Sequence record: LT603033.1
Direction: 5' to 3' (one strand)
DNA length: 64,000 nt
Under the pieces are notes generated by a model that was not told the DNA's origin, searched no databases, and was given only the letters and a program-made list of their open reading frames with translations. Shown piece after piece: positions 13,089-63,195 of this stretch (positions are counted from its first letter, which is position 1; each line of letters starts with the position of its first letter). Both the position numbers and the translations under genes were made by a program.

Positions 13089-13618
13089 AAGAAACATGTG
13101 TATTAACGTTTGGTCGTATTAATCCTGTACATCGTGGACATGGTTTAGTTTTTGAAAAGGCCAAAACATTACAAGAACAGTACAATGCTGATTTAAAAAT
13201 ATATCTAAGCACCAGTACTGACAATATAAAAAACCCACTCCCACCTGAACTAAAAATGTATTATACAGAGGGATTCTATCCTTCAGTGCAAGAGAACATC
13301 TACACAGAAGACAATCTATTTGATATAATGAGAGAACTGGATGGAAAGTACTTAGATGTTCTTTTCATTTGTGGTTCTGACCGTATTGATTCTTTTCAAA
13401 AAACTCTTGACATGTACAATGGTAAGTTGTATAATTTTTGTAGTATAAAAGCAATTCAAGCAGGTATTGACCGTAATGTAAGTCAATATAGCTCAACACA
13501 AATGCGTAACTTCGCAAAAAATGAAGATTTTGATAGTTTTCGTGAGTTTTTACCTGGAAATGACGAGGACTTAAAAATACAATTATTTGAAGACGTTATA
13601 AAATACATGAGGAAATAA
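13085..13618 (+). CDS. HxGH cytidylyl/nucleotidyltransferase-like protein
   Basis: TFGRINPVHRGH, CGSDR, YSSTQMR. Confidence 0.8.
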   Translation: MKETCVLTFGRINPVHRGHGLVFEKAKTLQEQYNADLKIYLSTSTDNIKNPLPPELKMYYTEGFYPSVQENIYTEDNLFDIMRELDGKYLDVLFICGSDRIDSFQKTLDMYNGKLYNFCSIKAIQAGIDRNVSQYSSTQMRNFAKNEDFDSFREFLPGNDEDLKIQLFEDVIKYMRK

Positions 13619-33701: not shown

Positions 33702-33992
33702 ATGAAAGTACTAGTACGTAATAATACGGAAGTAGCAAATGTATTAGAAGATTCCGATTTTATTAATGTTGCGTTCGATCAAATTAGTGCAGTAGCACTT
33801 GAATTAAAAAATGTAGATGAATCTGAGCGTGTGCTGAATGGTTTTGCAATTGTACTTGAATTAATGAAGGAAGTACTANNNNNNNNNNNNNNNNNNNNNG
33901 TTGATGCGGTTCAACATGCAGAAGCTGTGCGTAAAGAACACGGTACATTCTCTGACAAAAAATACATTCAAACTGATGAGGTAAAAGAATAA
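33702..33992 (+). CDS. Hypothetical protein (contains N gap)
   Basis: GGAG RBS; frame kept across gap. Confidence 0.65.
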   Translation: MKVLVRNNTEVANVLEDSDFINVAFDQISAVALELKNVDESERVLNGFAIVLELMKEVLXXXXXXXVDAVQHAEAVRKEHGTFSDKKYIQTDEVKE

Positions 33993-33993
33993 T

Positions 33994-34440
33994 ATGTCCA
34001 ATGCACAATATAAAGATGGTTATGACGCATACAAAGCAAAAGTAGTTCTAAGTGCTGAACAGCTAAAAATGCAGCATCCATTATATCGTCAGGGCTATCG
34101 TGCAGCACAAGCAGAAGCAATGAAGAAAAATAATGTAACTTTCCCTACTACACTATATGATATTCCAAAACGTCCACACATTTTTAAAGCTGAATGGACT
34201 GATATTATGGCAGCGACAAAGCGTCCACGCTTTGCTAAATTACACACCGATGAAGGTCGCTGGTTGCTAATGGGGATTATGAAAGCAGTTGAGAATCAAT
34301 CTCATAAGATTGTTCGTTATAAAGATGTTGTTNNNNNNNNNNNNNNNNNNNNNNNCCTTGTACTTCAATATGGTTATGATGAAGGTGTTCTAACTGTCGC
34401 TGATTGTGAAAAATATCAGTACACCCCATATCAAAAATAA
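33994..34440 (+). CDS. Hypothetical protein (contains N gap)
   Basis: ORF; terminator follows. Confidence 0.7.
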   Translation: MSNAQYKDGYDAYKAKVVLSAEQLKMQHPLYRQGYRAAQAEAMKKNNVTFPTTLYDIPKRPHIFKAEWTDIMAATKRPRFAKLHTDEGRWLLMGIMKAVENQSHKIVRYKDVVXXXXXXXXLVLQYGYDEGVLTVADCEKYQYTPYQK

Positions 34441-34450
34441 TATTGTGAAA

Positions 34451-34479
34451 AGGAATCCTATCATGGGATTCCTATTTTT
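34451..34479 (+). terminator. Intrinsic terminator
   Basis: AGGAATCCTA-tca-TGGGATTCCT plus ATTTTT. Confidence 0.8.
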
Positions 34480-34566
34480 ATTGCTGTATATCAATTTTCC
34501 ATTGATCATATTTTGATCTATATGAGCTAAATACCCAAGGAATCATTGTTACTAGGGTAGGTGAAT

Positions 34567-35115
34567 ATGCAGCAATATAATTTAACTGAAGAACAAAGTG
34601 ATATTTTTTACCATCATNNNNNNNNNNNNNNNNNNNNNNNTTTAAAAATTAATTCTGAAGCAATTGATATATTGAAGAAATGGTATAGTTGTTATAATAA
34701 AAACAAAAAGTGGTATTGGTTTAATAGAAATATAAAATCATTTCTAAAAACAATCACATACACTGATAGTATTGAGTTAATACATAGTTCTATTGGATAT
34801 AGTTACTTAACTAAACACAACAGTACTATGATGTTATCAGGGTTTAAAGTTGAAAGAATTTCCAAGTTAACAGGTTTGTCATTAGAAACAATTCTATATG
34901 ATATTGAGAAAATTTGGAAAACTATAGAATTAATGCATAAAAATATGTCATTCATATATAGAAATNNNNNNNNNNNNNNNNNNNNNNNNNNNNATCATAA
35001 TAAACCGTATGTATTGGATGAAAAGTACTATAATCATATGGAAGTTTGTTCTAAACTCGTTGATGATTGGAATCTAGAGGGACATAATGAAATACACACA
35101 CCTAAGTATAGATGA
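34567..35115 (+). CDS. Hypothetical protein (contains N gaps)
   Basis: ORF across two small gaps. Confidence 0.6.
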   Translation: MQQYNLTEEQSDIFYHHXXXXXXXXLKINSEAIDILKKWYSCYNKNKKWYWFNRNIKSFLKTITYTDSIELIHSSIGYSYLTKHNSTMMLSGFKVERISKLTGLSLETILYDIEKIWKTIELMHKNMSFIYRNXXXXXXXXXXHNKPYVLDEKYYNHMEVCSKLVDDWNLEGHNEIHTPKYR

Positions 35116-35611
35116 TACTAATATCTGGTTAGATAACATAATCAAGACATTAGAATTAATTAAACTTACATTACAAAAAACTACTGATATTGAAATTAAT
35201 ATTAAACAAGAAATATTAAACTATTATCATAGAAACAAATATAGCACGTTTATCTCTAAATTAATTTATGGATTATATGATATTGAAGATATTTGCATCG
35301 GTTACAGTACTGGTATTTGCTTCACAGTTAATGGTTTAAAAAATGATTTAAATTTCAGACTTTCCGATGAAGAGCAAGATTTTCGTAGATTTTGTGATAA
35401 TATTATGGATACAGATAAAATTACATTTGTTATTGAATTAAATCAAACGTGGTCTACATATGCAGATAAACCATTTGAAATTAATGAAACAGATGTGTTA
35501 AACTATATTCGAGTTATGAAAATTCATGATTTGTGTAAAAACGCATTGTTAAGTATTGGAGCTTATAATGAAACATACGACTTGGTTGAAGATAGCAGAA
35601 GTAGTTGCTGA
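35087..35611 (+). CDS. Hypothetical protein
   Basis: GAGGGA RBS. Confidence 0.7.
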   Translation: MKYTHLSIDDTNIWLDNIIKTLELIKLTLQKTTDIEINIKQEILNYYHRNKYSTFISKLIYGLYDIEDICIGYSTGICFTVNGLKNDLNFRLSDEEQDFRRFCDNIMDTDKITFVIELNQTWSTYADKPFEINETDVLNYIRVMKIHDLCKNALLSIGAYNETYDLVEDSRSSC

Positions 35612-36047
35612 GGAAAGTAAATGTATTTCACAANNNNNNNNNNNNNNNNNNNNNNNNNNNNNNNNNNNNNNNNNNNNNNNNNNNNNNNNNNNNNNNNNNN
35701 NNNNNNNNNNNNNNNNNNNNNNNNNNNNNNNNNNNNNNNNNNNNNNNNNNNNNNNNNNNNNNNNNNNNNNNNNNNNNNNNNNNNNNNNNNNNNNNNNNNN
35801 NNNNNNNNNNNNNNNNNNNNNNNNNNNNNNNNNNNNNNNNNNNNNNNNNNNNNNNNNNNNNNNNNNNNNNNNNNNNNNNNNNNNNNNNNNNNNNNNNNNN
35901 NNNNNNNNNNNNNNNNNNNNNNNNNNNNNNNNNNNNNNNNNNNNNNNNNNNNNNNNNNNNNNNNNNNNNNNNNNNNNNNNNNNNNNNNNNNNNNNNNNNN
36001 NNNNAATTATTGTTAATTGCATTTATGATAAGGGTCTTGATAAATGA
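35568..36047 (+). CDS. cd: Probable dCMP deaminase, mostly hidden by N gap
   Basis: N-terminus MKHTTWLKIAEVVAEESKCIS resembles T4 Cd (MKASTVLQIAYLVSQESKCCS); catalytic motifs fall in the gap. Confidence 0.65.
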   Translation: MKHTTWLKIAEVVAEESKCISQXXXXXXXXXXXXXXXXXXXXXXXXXXXXXXXXXXXXXXXXXXXXXXXXXXXXXXXXXXXXXXXXXXXXXXXXXXXXXXXXXXXXXXXXXXXXXXXXXXXXXXXXXXXXXXXXXXXXXXXXXXXXIIVNCIYDKGLDK

Positions 36048-36232
36048 CAGTAATAATTATTATTGCTTTTCTAATAACAGTGTTTTTCATTTTTATGTTA
36101 TATATAGTTGCTATGGATGAACCTAATACTTCTTTTCGAAATTATGAAGTTCGTTTTTCTGCACAAAATAATAAGTACTATATTGTAAACTGTATACACC
36201 GTAGTGAGAAAAGGGTAACAAGTAGATTTGGA
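36044..36232 (+). CDS. Membrane-anchored hypothetical protein; 3-prime end lost in gap
   Basis: Hydrophobic N-terminus, ATGA overlap. Confidence 0.55.
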
Positions 36233-36331
36233 NNNNNNNNNNNNNNNNNNNNNNNNNNNNNNNNNNNNNNNNNNNNNNNNNNNNNNNNNNNNNNNNNNNN
36301 NNNNNNNNNNNNNGTATGGCTCCTTTTTTTG

Positions 36332-36709
36332 TTAACCAGGGAGGTTACAATAATACAAATCCCAAGGGTGATATTTCATCGCACCAGTACTCAATTTAAT
36401 TTTATGAAACTGGAATGATTCGGCAAATGCACTATCGTCAATCTTAATACAAAAAGTGTTTTTGGCTAGAGTTGGTGCAATTTCCAATGCTGTTTTAGAT
36501 GCATCTAATCTAATTTTATCTTTATCATAACTAGTGATAGTTACAAAACGATAAACATTAAAATCAGTATCAATGAGATCGTAAACACAACTAGAACGTT
36601 GATTAAAGATGTTCAAGTTATATTTCAATTCACCGTTTATATTAGCTGCGGTTACACAAAACCCGCCGATATTGAATGGTAGTTTACCTTGTGCTGCGAT
36701 AGCTTTCAT
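36332..36709 (-). CDS. Hypothetical protein; only credible minus-strand gene
   Basis: AAAAAGGAAATAAAAT-ATG RBS on minus strand; no competing + ORF over most of its length. Confidence 0.7.
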   Translation of the reverse strand: MKAIAAQGKLPFNIGGFCVTAANINGELKYNLNIFNQRSSCVYDLIDTDFNVYRFVTITSYDKDKIRLDASKTALEIAPTLAKNTFCIKIDDSAFAESFQFHKIKLSTGAMKYHPWDLYYCNLPG

Positions 36710-36779
36710 ATTTTATTTCCTTTTTTAAATATAAGTATGAAATATATTTGTTTTTTACATCAGATGCACCATGAACTAG

Positions 36780-36808
36780 TTGACAAAACATCAGTGGTAT
36801 GATATGAT
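36780..36808 (+). promoter_or_regulatory. sigma70-type promoter
   Basis: TTGACA-17-TATGAT with TGA before the -10. Confidence 0.65.
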
Positions 36809-36870
36809 CTGTTATAAACTGTACACCTTAAGTTTTATTTTTAAAAATTTGAGTTAAGTACAGAAAAAGT

Positions 36871-36899
36871 TTGACTTAAGTGTTTAAGTACTATATTAT
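36871..36899 (+). promoter_or_regulatory. sigma70-type promoter
   Basis: TTGACT-17-TATTAT. Confidence 0.55.
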
Positions 36900-36934
36900 T
36901 TATATCTTCCTAAACAAAATTGAGGACTTGTTAT

Positions 36935-37543
36935 ATGAAAAGACTATGGCTTGAAGTGATACAAGCAGCGATGTTTCTATTGTTAATAAATTTTCCAGCC
37001 AGTGCTGGTATTGAAAGTAAAAATGTGATAAAGTATAATCCTGAAACCCGAAATGTATATTTCATATCAGATATTACAGATGGGTCACTCAAGAGAATGA
37101 TAGAGTTGTATGATAAAGAACACTATGATACCATCACAATTACATCTCCTGGTGGTGATTTTGATGCAGGTATTCGAATGGCAAACTTTGTTAGAGACAA
37201 TGGGATAAATTTAATTGTTTCTAGGTATTGCAATTCAGCATGTACTGTGGTATTCTTTAGTGTATCTCCCGAAAAGCGATATATGACAAATCGCTCAGTA
37301 CTGGGTCTTCATAACATTTCGATTAAAAGTAATGTTACTGATGGTGATAATTCATTTGTGTCTGTAAGACAGCTATCAACTTTTACCGAAGAAATGGCAA
37401 CAAAGGTAGGTTTCCTTTTTTCACTATATGCAGCAAATGGAATCCCACCAGAAGTTCTATTTAGAGTTAGTCGTTCTCGTGGTGAAGATGTTGTAATATT
37501 AACAAAACCAGAACTGGTTTTTTACGGTTCAGTCAAACAATAA
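36935..37543 (+). CDS. Signal-peptide-bearing ClpP/crotonase-fold protein
   Basis: Signal-like N-terminus ending ASA; ITITSPGGD, CNSAC, LGLH. Confidence 0.65.
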   Translation: MKRLWLEVIQAAMFLLLINFPASAGIESKNVIKYNPETRNVYFISDITDGSLKRMIELYDKEHYDTITITSPGGDFDAGIRMANFVRDNGINLIVSRYCNSACTVVFFSVSPEKRYMTNRSVLGLHNISIKSNVTDGDNSFVSVRQLSTFTEEMATKVGFLFSLYAANGIPPEVLFRVSRSRGEDVVILTKPELVFYGSVKQ

Positions 37544-37613
37544 AAATAATTAAAATAACAGGATGATTATGATGTACTTCCTTTGTTATTAATTATATTG
37601 AGATTATATAACT

Positions 37614-37874
37614 ATGACAAACATCCAAAACTTGACATCTATTATTTTTTATGCTACTGTAGTAATGTATGCTACAGTTATTTTTCTAACAGTTTTCATT
37701 TACAAAGATTATCGTAATGGCTTTATTGATCCAACTACAATGAAGTTCAATTCAAAATTCGAAGCAATAATTTATTATGTACTATCAACTTCATACTTGG
37801 TGTGCCTAATGTTGTTAGGAGCACTAATTTATATCTTATACACAACATTATTTGCAATTGGAGCTATTTTATGA
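37614..37874 (+). CDS. Small membrane protein
   Basis: Two hydrophobic segments. Confidence 0.7.
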   Translation: MTNIQNLTSIIFYATVVMYATVIFLTVFIYKDYRNGFIDPTTMKFNSKFEAIIYYVLSTSYLVCLMLLGALIYILYTTLFAIGAIL

Positions 37875-38464
37875 CCTGTATTATTGCACACACTGACGGA
37901 GTAAGTTCTTTTATTGCTGGCGATAAGTTAGGAAGCAATGGATTTACAAAAACTGTTCAAACTGAGCCAAAGGTTTTCGAGAAAGAATTTATCAAGTTAC
38001 ATGATGATGGACTAACTAGAACTAAAGAAGTAATGGCATTGGGTTATACTACATCATTTCGTATGGGTCAGTTGTTAAATTATAACCTTAATTTACCTGA
38101 ACAAGCTGCTGGTCAAACATTTTCACAATATTTGGTTCTTAAAGTTATTCCANNNNNNNNNNNNNNNNNNNNNNNNNNNNNNNNNNNNNNNNNNNNNNNN
38201 NNNNNNNNNNNNNNNNNNNNNNNNNNNNNNNNNNNNNNNNNNNNNNNNNNNNNNNNNNNNNNNNNNNNNNNNNNNNNNNNNNNNNNNNNNNNNNNNNNNN
38301 NNNNNNNNNNNNNNNNNNNNNNNNNNNNNNNNNNNNNNNNNNNNNNNNNNNNNNNNNNNNNNNNNNNNNNNNNNNNNNNNNNNNNNNNNNNNNNNNNNNN
38401 NNNNNNNNNNNNNNNNNNNNNNNNNNNNNNCGTAAGCGAAGAGTTTGATGTTTTAAAATATTAA
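37871..38464 (+). CDS. HslV/proteasome-beta-like Ntn peptidase (contains N gap)
   Basis: MTCIIA (N-terminal Thr nucleophile), AGD, PKVF, GYTTSFRMGQLL. Confidence 0.65.
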   Translation: MTCIIAHTDGVSSFIAGDKLGSNGFTKTVQTEPKVFEKEFIKLHDDGLTRTKEVMALGYTTSFRMGQLLNYNLNLPEQAAGQTFSQYLVLKVIPXXXXXXXXXXXXXXXXXXXXXXXXXXXXXXXXXXXXXXXXXXXXXXXXXXXXXXXXXXXXXXXXXXXXXXXXXXXXXXXXXXXXXXXXXXXXXVSEEFDVLKY

Positions 38465-58542: not shown

Positions 58543-59064
58543 ATGGATATGTTTTTTGGATCAGTTGGAAAACAAAACAGTACTTTAATTTGGCATGAAA
58601 TTATCTTTAAAATTATATCTAAAAGCTACTCACTAAAGGATATTATCACCACAGATAATGATAGACGTATCCTGTTAGATGCAAAATATAAATTGAGCAA
58701 ACACCCTTTACTTTCTTTAATCATTGATTACGTTAATGATTATGAATCTAGTCGTTGGAAGTGGGAAGACGGCGGTTTATTTCGTGGAAAAACATTCTAC
58801 GGTGCGGAACGATATGTTTTCAGTGATGCATCAAATGGCGTTAAGTTTGTTATTAGAAACTTTAACTCCAAAGAAAATGATTATCTTGAAAGTGGAGTGA
58901 AAGTATATATCGATAATAATAGCAATGTCCTAACATATGACGAATCACTAATTATGTTACAAATAATGCGTGGAGTTGAAGGTGTAAGAAACAACCTTAC
59001 TAAATTGAAAATCCAGCAAAATGATATACATAATAGACAGAAAATTAAGGGTTTATATAAATGA
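58543..59064 (+). CDS. Hypothetical protein, triplet paralog 2
   Basis: KSYSLK...TDNDRRILLDAKYKLSK. Confidence 0.8.
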   Translation: MDMFFGSVGKQNSTLIWHEIIFKIISKSYSLKDIITTDNDRRILLDAKYKLSKHPLLSLIIDYVNDYESSRWKWEDGGLFRGKTFYGAERYVFSDASNGVKFVIRNFNSKENDYLESGVKVYIDNNSNVLTYDESLIMLQIMRGVEGVRNNLTKLKIQQNDIHNRQKIKGLYK

Positions 59065-59570
59065 TTTCATTTTTCAAAAAGAAACAAAAAGTTGATGAAA
59101 CCGGATTAGAATCGTTTCTATGGACTCTTATCATCAAAAAAAGTCCATTGATAAAAGAATATGCTATCAATGATGCTAATAGAAAAACTATCATTGAATA
59201 CAAATACGAATTATCAAAATGCGATCCAATCGTTTATCACTTTGCGAAGTACTGTTCAAAAAATTTATCGGATATCACAATAGACCATGAGTCAGTTCCA
59301 ATGAGCTTTCCTTATGGTGATTGGGTAGATACTTTTGATATTTTTGATGGGTCCAATGGATTCAGTTTCTTTTACTCGTCAAATAAAGCAAATGTTCGTA
59401 TTAAAACAGAGATAGGTTGGGCACAGCATAGCTCAAATAAAGAAGATTATAATTTATTAGCTGACGTATACCGAAGTGTGAAGAATTCAAAGGATATTGA
59501 TGAAAGAATTAAAAAGCAAAATCGTATATCTTTATCACTTGAAACATACAAGTCAAAGTATGGTGGTTAA
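59061..59570 (+). CDS. Hypothetical protein, triplet paralog 3
   Basis: KSPLIK...NDANRKTIIEYKYELSK. Confidence 0.8.
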   Translation: MISFFKKKQKVDETGLESFLWTLIIKKSPLIKEYAINDANRKTIIEYKYELSKCDPIVYHFAKYCSKNLSDITIDHESVPMSFPYGDWVDTFDIFDGSNGFSFFYSSNKANVRIKTEIGWAQHSSNKEDYNLLADVYRSVKNSKDIDERIKKQNRISLSLETYKSKYGG

Positions 59571-61203: not shown

Positions 61204-61315
61204 CATATACAAGTGTATAATGGTACTAAAAATGCCATTATACTCGATAAATACTCAATATAAATTAACGCAAGGATTAAGTCTGGCACACCAAATCGTT
61301 TCCGTGATTTATAAC

Positions 61316-61344
61316 TTGACATAGAAAAAGTAATTATGTATAAT
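61316..61344 (+). promoter_or_regulatory. Consensus sigma70 promoter
   Basis: TTGACA-17-TATAAT. Confidence 0.85.
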
Positions 61345-61345
61345 C

Positions 61346-61375
61346 AGAGAACTTCATATGGAGTTCTCTTTTTTT
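61346..61375 (+). terminator. Terminator hairpin directly after the -10 box
   Basis: AGAGAACTTC-atat-GGAGTTCTCT plus T run. Confidence 0.85.
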
Positions 61376-61388
61376 ATAAGGTGATAAA

Positions 61389-61808
61389 ATGTTAAATGAA
61401 CGTATTAAAAATGCACTACATGTATTGAACCAAGAAGTAAATTCTATTGATAAAAGTACTGACCGTTATAAAGTAATGCATGAAATCAAACAAGAATTGG
61501 AATCTATTAATAAGGGAGAATGGTGGTATCTTCAGCCCGAATATCAAACTCGTGAATTAAACGATGTTGAAAAAGAAATTGTCAAATTCATCACTACTCG
61601 TTACTGTGATACATCAGAGAATGATGTATCAGCGAACTTCAATCTTACTAAATTGGAAGTCGAAGAAAAATTCAATTTTGATTGGCTTGATTGGATTGAA
61701 ATGGTAATGGAACTAGAAGAAAAATTCAATGTTGAAGTTGATGAAAAGTTCGAGAATAATGAAACTAAGCTGTATGAACTAGTAGAACATATTCAAAAAA
61801 TGTTGTAA
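61389..61808 (+). CDS. Acyl-carrier-protein-like protein lacking the phosphopantetheine Ser
   Basis: C-terminal DWLDWIEMVMELEEKFNVEV aligns with E. coli AcpP [20 protein letters not shown]. Confidence 0.7.
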   Translation: MLNERIKNALHVLNQEVNSIDKSTDRYKVMHEIKQELESINKGEWWYLQPEYQTRELNDVEKEIVKFITTRYCDTSENDVSANFNLTKLEVEEKFNFDWLDWIEMVMELEEKFNVEVDEKFENNETKLYELVEHIQKML

Positions 61809-61861: not shown

Positions 61862-62236
61862 ATGAGTATGTTAGAAATAATTGTTTCAAAAATTCTTATT
61901 CCATTTTGGAAACCAATTTCTTTTGTATTATTAATTGGCGGTTCAGCTTATGCTGGTTGGGAAGCTAATACTTATTACAGTGGCTATCAACAAAGCATAG
62001 AGCAACAAATAGCTAAAAAAGTTGATACCGCCTTGGATAAAATGCAACAAGAAAATGCAAAAAATTACCTTGAAACGAAAAAAATCATGGAAGATAATGC
62101 TAAAGTTATTGAAACAAAGGTTCCTTTTATTGTAGAACGTGAAGTTTATAAGAATGTATGTTTAGATGAAGATGGTGTAAAAGTACTGAATGAACTAAAA
62201 CAAAATTCTCAAGCTGCGAGGAATAAATTCAAATGA
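61862..62236 (+). CDS. Inner-membrane spanin (Rz-like)
   Basis: N-terminal TM, coiled-coil, C-terminal YKNVCLDEDG; paired with downstream lipoprotein. Confidence 0.8.
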   Translation: MSMLEIIVSKILIPFWKPISFVLLIGGSAYAGWEANTYYSGYQQSIEQQIAKKVDTALDKMQQENAKNYLETKKIMEDNAKVIETKVPFIVEREVYKNVCLDEDGVKVLNELKQNSQAARNKFK

Positions 62237-62541
62237 AAAAATTATTAGTTCCGTTTATTTCTTTTTTAATTATAAGTGGATGTGCCGAACAAGTAAAACT
62301 ACAATCCCCTGCTCCAATTAAACAAGAAATTCTGTTAGAAAGATGTGATGATGATACACCTCTACCACAAAAAATTATGATTGACAAAAATGGTTTTAAA
62401 GGTTATGATGGTGCAGAAATTCTTAAAGTACTTACTCGTTGGGATGCAGTCTACAATGAATGTGCTTTAAAACATGACGCATTGATTAAAACTATTCGTG
62501 ATTTACAAGGTAAAGATATTAAAATCAATATCAAGGAATAA
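62233..62541 (+). CDS. Outer-membrane lipoprotein spanin (Rz1-like)
   Basis: Lipobox ISGC; C..PLP; W..VYNECALKHDAL. Confidence 0.8.
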   Translation: MKKLLVPFISFLIISGCAEQVKLQSPAPIKQEILLERCDDDTPLPQKIMIDKNGFKGYDGAEILKVLTRWDAVYNECALKHDALIKTIRDLQGKDIKINIKE

Positions 62542-62542
62542 A

Positions 62543-63154
62543 ATGAACAAATATCATGTTTACTATACGACAAAATTATCACTTCTTGACGAATTAAATC
62601 AACGAAGTACTAAGATGAAACGCTACACTTTAAATGGAATTACTTTTAGGTATTTCCCACAAAAAGTTCTTACATTTATTAAGAATCCAAAATGCGTGGC
62701 ATGTGGGATTGAAGCCACTGAAGTACGCATTGAACGTTCATTTTGTTCTGATCCAGTATATGGTAAACCACATTTAAATGTATATGCTGTATGTGGTCTT
62801 TATGAAGTGTTGATGACAGTTGATCATAATCATCTGGCATCTAAGGGTGGACCTGATTTAGAGTCAAACTTTAATACTATGTGCTCCAGATGTAATCAAC
62901 TACGTTCGAATAAAACTGAAACAGTTGATGAGTTTCTTGAGAAAGTTAAAGGTCGTAATCTTCTCCAAGAACATATGAATAATTTCTTTAATGTACAAAA
63001 AAAGAAAAATAACATTGACAAGTCGAAACTACTAGAAGAACGTAGGTTACGTCAAGAATTATGGGAAACTGATCATCTATGGCATGTTCGAGAGTTTGGT
63101 CGTCATATGAAAGCTTTGAAAAAAGAACAGAAGAAATTGAATAAACATGATTGA
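62543..63154 (+). CDS. HNH endonuclease-domain protein
   Basis: AAGGA RBS; CVACG, MTVDH...SKGG...N...MCSRCNQLRSNK. Confidence 0.8.
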   Translation: MNKYHVYYTTKLSLLDELNQRSTKMKRYTLNGITFRYFPQKVLTFIKNPKCVACGIEATEVRIERSFCSDPVYGKPHLNVYAVCGLYEVLMTVDHNHLASKGGPDLESNFNTMCSRCNQLRSNKTETVDEFLEKVKGRNLLQEHMNNFFNVQKKKNNIDKSKLLEERRLRQELWETDHLWHVREFGRHMKALKKEQKKLNKHD

Positions 63155-63195
63155 TATGATATTATAGGGACTTGATTATTCAAGTCCTTTTTTTT
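63137..63195 (+). promoter_or_regulatory. sigma70-like promoter followed immediately by terminator hairpin
   Basis: TTGAAT-17-TATTAT(63160); GGACTTGA-ttat-TCAAGTCC plus T run. Confidence 0.6.

Follow-up and report, generated by a model that had tools for sequence, protein, structure and literature searches.

The DNA analysed here (the window) is a stretch of 64,000 nucleotides from sequence record LT603033.1, with a G+C content of 32.6%. On its plus strand, at 61389–61808, it carries a gene for a 139-aa protein (P0001) that was recognised as an open reading frame and by its match to PHROG 18343, and that we refer to as the pseudo-ACP gene. The sequence places a Shine-Dalgarno element, AAGGTG, at 61378–61383 of the same strand, 5 nt 5′ of the ATG. 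The protein itself divides into two parts, both read from the plus strand. Alignments and models assign residues 1–56 (61389–61556) to an N-terminal extension, a predicted helical hairpin (helices 4–18 and 23–41) followed by a linker, and residues 57–139 (61557–61805) match the acyl carrier protein (ACP) fold in profile, PDB, Foldseek, VIA-align, BLASTP and ESM-Atlas comparisons. Within the ACP-fold domain, the family alignment locates the equivalent of recognition helix II at residues 98–113 (61680–61727, plus strand), and the second residue of this helix, W99 (codon TGG, 61683–61685, plus strand), is aligned with the position of Ser36, the phosphopantetheine-bearing residue of AcpP.

In a megablast search the segment 60900–62300 was 100% identical to Escherichia phage vB_Eco_slurp01 and mostly 98.6–99.5% identical to 121Q, PBECO4, phAPEC6, Sharanji and others. 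To judge from its sequence, the source is an Asteriusvirus jumbo coliphage of the slurp01/121Q group, that is, a member of the RaK2-like myoviruses with genomes of about 350 kb. Seven runs of N, 825 bases in total, lie at 33879–38430 of the window and represent masked bases or gaps.

Promoter, terminator-like hairpin and gene neighbourhood

The preliminary description had placed a TTGACA-17-TATAAT promoter ahead of the gene, and a motif scan indeed located a sigma-70-type promoter of this form, matching the consensus at 12 of 12 positions, at 61316–61344 on the plus strand. Sites with at most one mismatch to TTGACA-17-TATAAT occur 15 times in the window as compared to 2.07 expected, 14 of the 15 being on the plus strand, and such promoter-like sites are therefore real features of the phage. 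A second perfect site is found at 13407–13435. In the related phage CBB, RpoD-like promoters have been assigned to early genes (PMC5259590).

The same region contains an intrinsic-terminator-like hairpin (61346–61369; 10 bp stem, 4 nt loop), which the scan reported together with its T run at 61346–61376 of the plus strand. The hairpin begins two bases past the −10 hexamer and covers the position at which transcription from the promoter is expected to start. The full hairpin has a folding energy of −13.0 kcal/mol, and an RNA starting at the expected start (61350–61352) retains −3.5 to −1.6 kcal/mol; we infer that the hairpin stops transcripts arriving from upstream and lets promoter-initiated RNA through. 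This terminator–promoter cassette is kept in Sharanji, phAPEC6, A4, ph0011 and Turkey5, in all five of which the −35 hexamer and a −10-like hexamer are preserved and the spacers have diverged. It is missing from EcMJ and TH47, where the pseudo-ACP gene begins 10 nt past the nucleotidyltransferase gene, and from RaK2 and CBB, where it overlaps the upstream ORF. The suggestion that the promoter is of an early type is therefore plausible for the clade of this phage but does not hold family-wide; since the promoter is absent in several members, early expression is not a conserved property.

Downstream, an Rz-like i-spanin gene (61862–62236, plus strand; PHROG 1152, E 6.6e-29) starts 53 nt 3′ of the pseudo-ACP gene, and is followed by a putative o-spanin lipoprotein gene (62233–62541, plus strand) with a lipobox (...SGC) and an annotated o-spanin counterpart in phage Muenster. 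The scan picked up nothing terminator-like in the 53 nt that separate the pseudo-ACP and i-spanin genes, and the sequence therefore suggests that pseudo-ACP is probably co-transcribed with the i-spanin and o-spanin genes. The RNA data for the region consisted solely of low-depth wastewater metatranscriptome contigs, in which all genes were patchily covered and which carry no information on the start, timing or level of transcription.

The pseudo-ACP gene lies directly upstream of the spanin pair both in the window and in its relatives, and the order nucleotidyltransferase (PHROG 388) ... pseudo-ACP, i-spanin, o-spanin, usually then followed by an HNH endonuclease gene, is kept in Asterius-, Alcyoneus- and Mimasvirus. 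This arrangement raises the question of whether the protein could belong to a complex encoded by the phage, as its adaptor or accessory subunit, rather than being a competitor of host AcpP, in which case its partner could come from the same conserved block, either the nucleotidyltransferase upstream or the spanin and lysis genes downstream. ACP has such roles in mitochondrial complex I, MukBEF, and mycobacterial EmbAB and MmpL5, and the gene order shared by three genera and the uninterrupted run into the spanin genes would suit an adaptor; in Eneladusvirus, moreover, an ACP gene is located near a spanin-like gene and the ACP was detected by virion mass spectrometry (PMC7760394). However, jumbo phages are broadly collinear, so that shared gene order, and with it the spanin linkage, is weak evidence, and the i-spanin has almost no cytoplasmic part for binding. 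The serine-less ACP-like gene of Ackermannviridae described below does not adjoin annotated spanins either. Furthermore, the phAPEC6 virion proteome includes gp314c (the tail fibre) and gp315c, but not gp313c, which is the ACP-like protein (PMC7247149). We regard the adaptor role, the principal alternative to our own reading, as rather unlikely. The separate idea that the protein is a component of the virion in Asteriusvirus finds no support, as the ACP-like protein is missing from the phAPEC6 list.

The junction between the nucleotidyltransferase and pseudo-ACP genes differs among these phages. Relative to 121Q, phAPEC6 and Sharanji, a segment is missing from the window at 61204–61315, and the missing segment carries a 2.8-kb tail-fibre gene (phAPEC6 gp314c, a virion protein) as well as small ORFs. 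Alignment to Sharanji, phAPEC6, A4 and Turkey5 shows that the tail-fibre gene survives as a remnant of its final ~28 nt, TAA stop included, at 61288–61315 of the plus strand, and megablast coverage of the relatives begins at about 61287. A layout similar to the tail-fibre-less junction of the window is seen in ph0011 and UE-S1, and the wastewater contigs have the 121Q-type junction at 61287. Just 3′ of the nucleotidyltransferase stop codon lies an inverted repeat, GTATAATGG ... CCATTATAC, at 61214–61243, which is part of an intergenic fold of −22 kcal/mol with no T run after it. Further upstream of the nucleotidyltransferase gene, 58543–59570 holds two adjoining paralogous genes encoding 173 and 169 aa (PHROGs 18641 and 7868, which cross-match). 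On the other side of the pseudo-ACP gene, a promoter-like site matching at 11 of 12 positions (62381–62409) sits inside the o-spanin gene, ahead of the HNH endonuclease gene (62498/62543–63154), and a terminator-like hairpin follows that gene at 63166–63189; on its sequence layout, 62381–63189 looks like a self-contained mobile-endonuclease cassette.

ACP fold and N-terminal extension

By sequence matches and by predicted structure, residues of about 57–139 form an ACP fold, as had been proposed from an alignment of the C-terminal part with AcpP by eye. The ACP model TIGR00517 matched residues 90–137 (E 1e-5), scoring 25.3 bits where the curated cut-off is 70.45, and every other NCBIfam ACP model likewise scored P0001 under its cut-off. 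Two PHROG families labelled 'acyl carrier protein' also matched (5934, E 1.6e-7; 4154, E 4.2e-6), as did PHROG 18343, whose function is unannotated and which covers residues 2–139, the N-terminal hairpin included (E 1.3e-61). Accordingly, P0001 has a full-length match in a RaK2-like family with the helix II motif F-x-F-D-x-L-D-W. In a phmmer search of the PDB, ACPs were the best 57 of 60 matches, their D-S-L-D being aligned with D-W-L-D, and in BLASTP E. coli AcpP (as given for MG1655) was 48% identical to P0001 over 31 aa (E 1e-6).

The structural comparisons point in the same direction. An AlphaFold2 model built with 14 family sequences reached a mean pLDDT of 84.5, with values >89 across most of the C-terminal domain. 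When this model was compared with the PDB by Foldseek, the best 50 matches were carrier proteins throughout, with target-normalised TM-scores (TMt) of up to 0.78, and in an exhaustive VIA-align search ACP and PCP domains ranked first (Z 8.7, rmsd 2.8 Å over 79 residues; model residues 55–139). The ESM-Atlas neighbours of P0001 are PF00550 clusters. Many of the VIA-align matches are ACPs that serve as structural subunits, including in non-lipid complexes, a point that may be added in favour of the adaptor role considered above. P0001 and AcpP, a type II ACP (PF00550 / TIGR00517), thus have the carrier-protein helical fold in common, as well as a closely similar helix II (D-x-L-D...E..M.LEE.F). 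Unlike AcpP, P0001 has Trp in place of Ser36, aromatic residues (F95, F97 and W102) around the former attachment site, a helical hairpin of 56 aa at its N terminus, and a score far under the family cut-off.

The N-terminal extension had been described as 60 aa long; it is present, with a length of about 56 aa. In the predicted structure its two helices are followed by a less confident linker, and M1, A9, L10, E16, S23 and Y27 are invariant. Whether the ACP domain or the extension was used alone as the query, the searches matched only the RaK2-like pseudo-ACP family. A language-model atlas search with the extension returned no matches, and the hairpin folded alone (pLDDT 80) gave no informative structural neighbour, the best Z being 5.4. 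An exhaustive search of representatives yielded eight proteins, which were family members or their fragments save for one weak match to a 1227-aa protein, and among IMG/VR viral contigs the family alignment matched solely 121Q. Full-length structural alignments to relatives in BFVD, among them the 'acyl carrier protein' of Serratia phage BF, gave a high rmsd, and therefore the models suggest that the extension and the ACP domain are perhaps not rigidly fixed to each other.

The attachment site and helix II across the family

The attachment motif of P0001 reads D98-W99-L100, W99 (TGG) being aligned to Ser36 of mature AcpP, so the initial reading of DSL as DWL was correct. To survey the site, we used P0001 as a tblastn query and obtained 51 phage records, all RaK2-like save for a few distant matches to the ACP domain only; the site was scored in 21 distinct family sequences. 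Trp is seen in 121Q, Sharanji, phAPEC6, EcMJ, TH47 and several metagenomic proteins, and the Trp codon is unchanged in the wastewater contigs that extend across the region. A sequencing error, which the preliminary description had allowed for as the origin of the Trp, is ruled out, the codon being present in every record of the clade that was read.

Serine was retained in only part of the family: 8 of the 21 sequences carry Ser and 8 carry Trp, and the remainder have Thr (2), Asn (1), Arg (1) or Glu (1). Trp characterises the 121Q-type phages, EcMJ, TH47 and the metagenomic proteins P0006–P0008; Ser is found in A4, ph0011, P0009–P0012, P0016 and Pectobacterium phage CBB; Thr in the Klebsiella phages RaK2 and Muenster; Asn in Turkey5; Arg in P0015, a close relative of Turkey5; and Glu in P0017. 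In a maximum-likelihood tree the Trp sequences constitute one clade, and hence a single origin, nested among Ser-bearing Asteriusviruses, and the six states require five changes. Since the Ser codon of the relatives is TCA, the change from Ser to Trp took two nucleotide steps. The pair of Turkey5 (L003:3001-3393) and P0015 is of separate interest: the two are closely related and have Asn and Arg, respectively, at the former Ser site, which therefore turns over even across short evolutionary distances.

This variability contrasts with the surroundings of the site. Among the 21 sequences its entropy is 2.01 bits, versus a mean of 0.94 for residues 95–115; on this alignment the attachment site is the most variable position of an otherwise nearly invariant helix II. 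No variation occurs at D98, D101 or F113, W102 is shared by 20 of the 21 sequences, and E104, E108 and E110 are nearly invariant. The seven residues D98, D101, W102, E104, E108, E110 and F113 correspond to D35, D38, T39, E41, A45, E47 and F50 of AcpP, in which helix II mediates interactions with Fab enzymes, MukB and IscS (PMC8602292, PMC13343975). Pairwise dN/dS between Trp- and Ser-bearing genes is 0.17–0.37, with similar values in the N-terminal extension and the ACP domain, and selection therefore maintains the gene with or without the Ser. The serine-less versions are 97–100% conserved among >20 phage isolates. Judged by these comparisons, the attachment Ser is dispensable across the whole phage family.

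We searched for carrier machinery in 121Q, the nearest complete record. The sole match to the ACP model in its genome is the pseudo-ACP gene, and neither AcpS (TIGR00516) nor an Sfp-type transferase domain (TIGR00556) was matched in 121Q, whereas the controls found both in most reference bacteria. The host has an AcpS, which cannot use Trp. The notion that the protein is non-loadable is thus supported more strongly than when it was proposed from the single sequence: the site holds S, W, T, N, R or E, conservation extends over the rest of helix II and over the extension, and purifying selection acts on the gene.

These data also bear on the possibility that the family consists of true carriers, the Ser-bearing members being loaded by host AcpS for acyl or aminoacyl transfer and the Trp, Thr, Asn, Arg and Glu versions being inactive relics. 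Ser is likely ancestral and persists in the eight sequences listed above, CBB, A4 and ph0011 among them, and the Ser members keep the helix II residues aligned to the conserved acidic residues of AcpP. AcpS recognises acidic helix II residues of AcpP. Several observations speak against this possibility: purifying selection acts on the Ser-less versions as it does on the rest, these versions are almost unchanged from isolate to isolate, the site has changed at least five times without decay of the gene, and 121Q has no transferase or second ACP. We consider true carriage very improbable.

Similarly, the resemblance to ACP could be incidental, the protein acting through its high acidity as an unspecific mimic of, for instance, nucleic acid, in the manner of Ocr or T7 gp5.9. 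The ACP domain contains 21 Asp+Glu versus 9 Lys+Arg and has a calculated pI of 4.3, and the net charge of the whole protein is about −15; as a precedent, T7 gp5.9, a DNA mimic, is reported to inhibit MukBEF (PMC7617805). But ACPs are acidic anyway, conservation in the family sits on the helix II motif and the hydrophobic core rather than on spread-out charge, and no DNA-mimic fold is among the Foldseek and VIA-align matches, which makes an unspecific acidic mimic very improbable.

A second Ser-less lineage came to light through a weak match to Serratia phage IME250, which led to an 'acyl carrier protein' of Ackermannviridae (PHROG 4154), a type of protein present in 273 phage records by tblastn. 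Its motif is G-G-D-[E/D]-L-D, with Ser replaced by Glu or Asp in 4 of 4 sampled genomes from three genera (IME250, Vi01, phiD3 and PhaxI; genes at L013:2357-2677, L015:1495-1809, L016:201-521 and L017:195-524). As a matter of speculation, the acidic residue could imitate the phosphate of the prosthetic group. Like P0001, the Ackermannviridae protein, of about 105 aa, has an N-terminal extension and the same helix II without the Ser; it differs in having Glu or Asp and not Trp, a different, shorter N-terminal part, and a different gene context with no annotated spanins adjoining, and it matches P0001 over the ACP domain only. Ser-less ACP-like proteins thus recur, as far as the sequences tell, in large virulent enterobacterial phages. 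According to the sequence evidence, two large phage groups have lost the carrier function or never required it, and have kept the partner-docking helix.

Possible partners and function of the pseudo-ACP

The protein combines an ACP fold with the lack of a usable attachment site and with a helix II and hairpin conserved under selection, from which we infer that it binds other proteins by means of the ACP recognition surface. In the broad sense of a cofactor-independent ACP-fold binding protein, this reading is very likely. Our more specific proposal, to which we give an even chance on the sequences and models, is that the gene product would be a cofactor-independent ACP-fold 'pseudo-ACP' that acts via protein–protein binding and not acyl carriage. 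That it does so as a mimic of host AcpP, within the cofactor-independent binding reading, is possible although somewhat doubtful. Under the proposal, host sigma-70 RNA polymerase would transcribe the gene from the consensus promoter, probably together with the two downstream spanin genes. Helix II of the pseudo-ACP would then dock on a basic ACP-binding site, most likely one normally occupied by host AcpP, which would make the protein a mimic or competitor, and the N-terminal hairpin would add the affinity or specificity required to compete with the very abundant AcpP. Against this proposal stands the bulky and variable residue (W, R, E) at the former attachment site, which is at the centre of carrier–enzyme interfaces, so that the binding mode may differ from canonical docking.

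Among the AcpP clients for which literature was examined, MukB is the sole one shown to accept apo-ACP. PlsB also accepts apo-ACP. In the case of MukB, apo-AcpP is bound at the joint and stimulates the ATPase to the same degree as holo-AcpP (PMC8602292). The idea of a decoy that titrates ACP partners, put forward in the preliminary description, is plausible as a hypothesis. The cellular concentration of AcpP, however, is about 100 μM (PMC8602292), so that simple titration would be difficult and a decoy would need a much higher affinity or very high expression. The literature disfavours two other candidates, SpoT and IscS. A screen for loss of the SpoT interaction yielded L42M among its ACP mutants (PMC3340395), and most family members have Met at the position of AcpP L42; in the case of IscS, S36T abolishes binding by ACP (PMC13343975). 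Co-folding of P0001 with pieces of E. coli MukB (residues 225–370 and 1060–1240, the AcpP-binding joint) gave a score of 0.01 in a single job, which amounts to 'no answer' and speaks neither for nor against binding.

Two known situations resemble the one proposed for P0001. The first is MukBEF-bound AcpP, which is a pure binding partner that acts through helix II with equal activity in the apo and holo forms, as would P0001; the difference is that in MukBEF it is the host's own AcpP that moonlights, whereas P0001 is a phage protein. The second is the toxicity of apo-ACP, in that unmodified ACP inhibits the growth of E. coli (Keating, Carey and Cronan 1995, J Biol Chem 270:22229; as cited in PMC13343975). 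An unloadable ACP impairs growth in this case, so that a Ser-less ACP-like protein can disturb host physiology, but the toxic ACP is an overproduced host protein and P0001 is an evolved viral gene. The target in this growth inhibition is reportedly PlsB.

In several GenBank records of such phages the gene is labelled 'acyl carrier protein', 'acpP' or 'D-alanyl carrier protein', names that imply lipid or carrier metabolism. For some of these phages, GenBank already records the fold and the name 'acyl carrier protein'; new relative to the literature searched are the dispensability of the Ser family-wide, the Trp in the 121Q clade, and the Ser-less state of the sampled Ackermannviridae proteins. 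The annotation should become 'ACP-like, lacks the phosphopantetheine attachment serine'. Our literature search for functional studies of any phage ACP-like protein found none.

In its most far-reaching form, the hypothesis is that both RaK2-like jumbo phages and Ackermannviridae encode evolved cofactor-free AcpP mimics, the higher-affinity docking of which, for example on the MukB joint or PlsB, switches off a host process or blinds an AcpP-dependent sensor. We hold this to be unlikely as it stands. The loss of the carrier site together with the retained docking helix points to the role of ACP as a hub that contacts MukB, IscS, SpoT and lipid enzymes as a possible viral target, and P0001 is a small, easily expressed protein with which this idea can be tested. 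If the hypothesis is true, the process switched off could be chromosome condensation or phospholipid synthesis, and the pseudo-ACPs would represent a new class of host takeover by protein mimicry.
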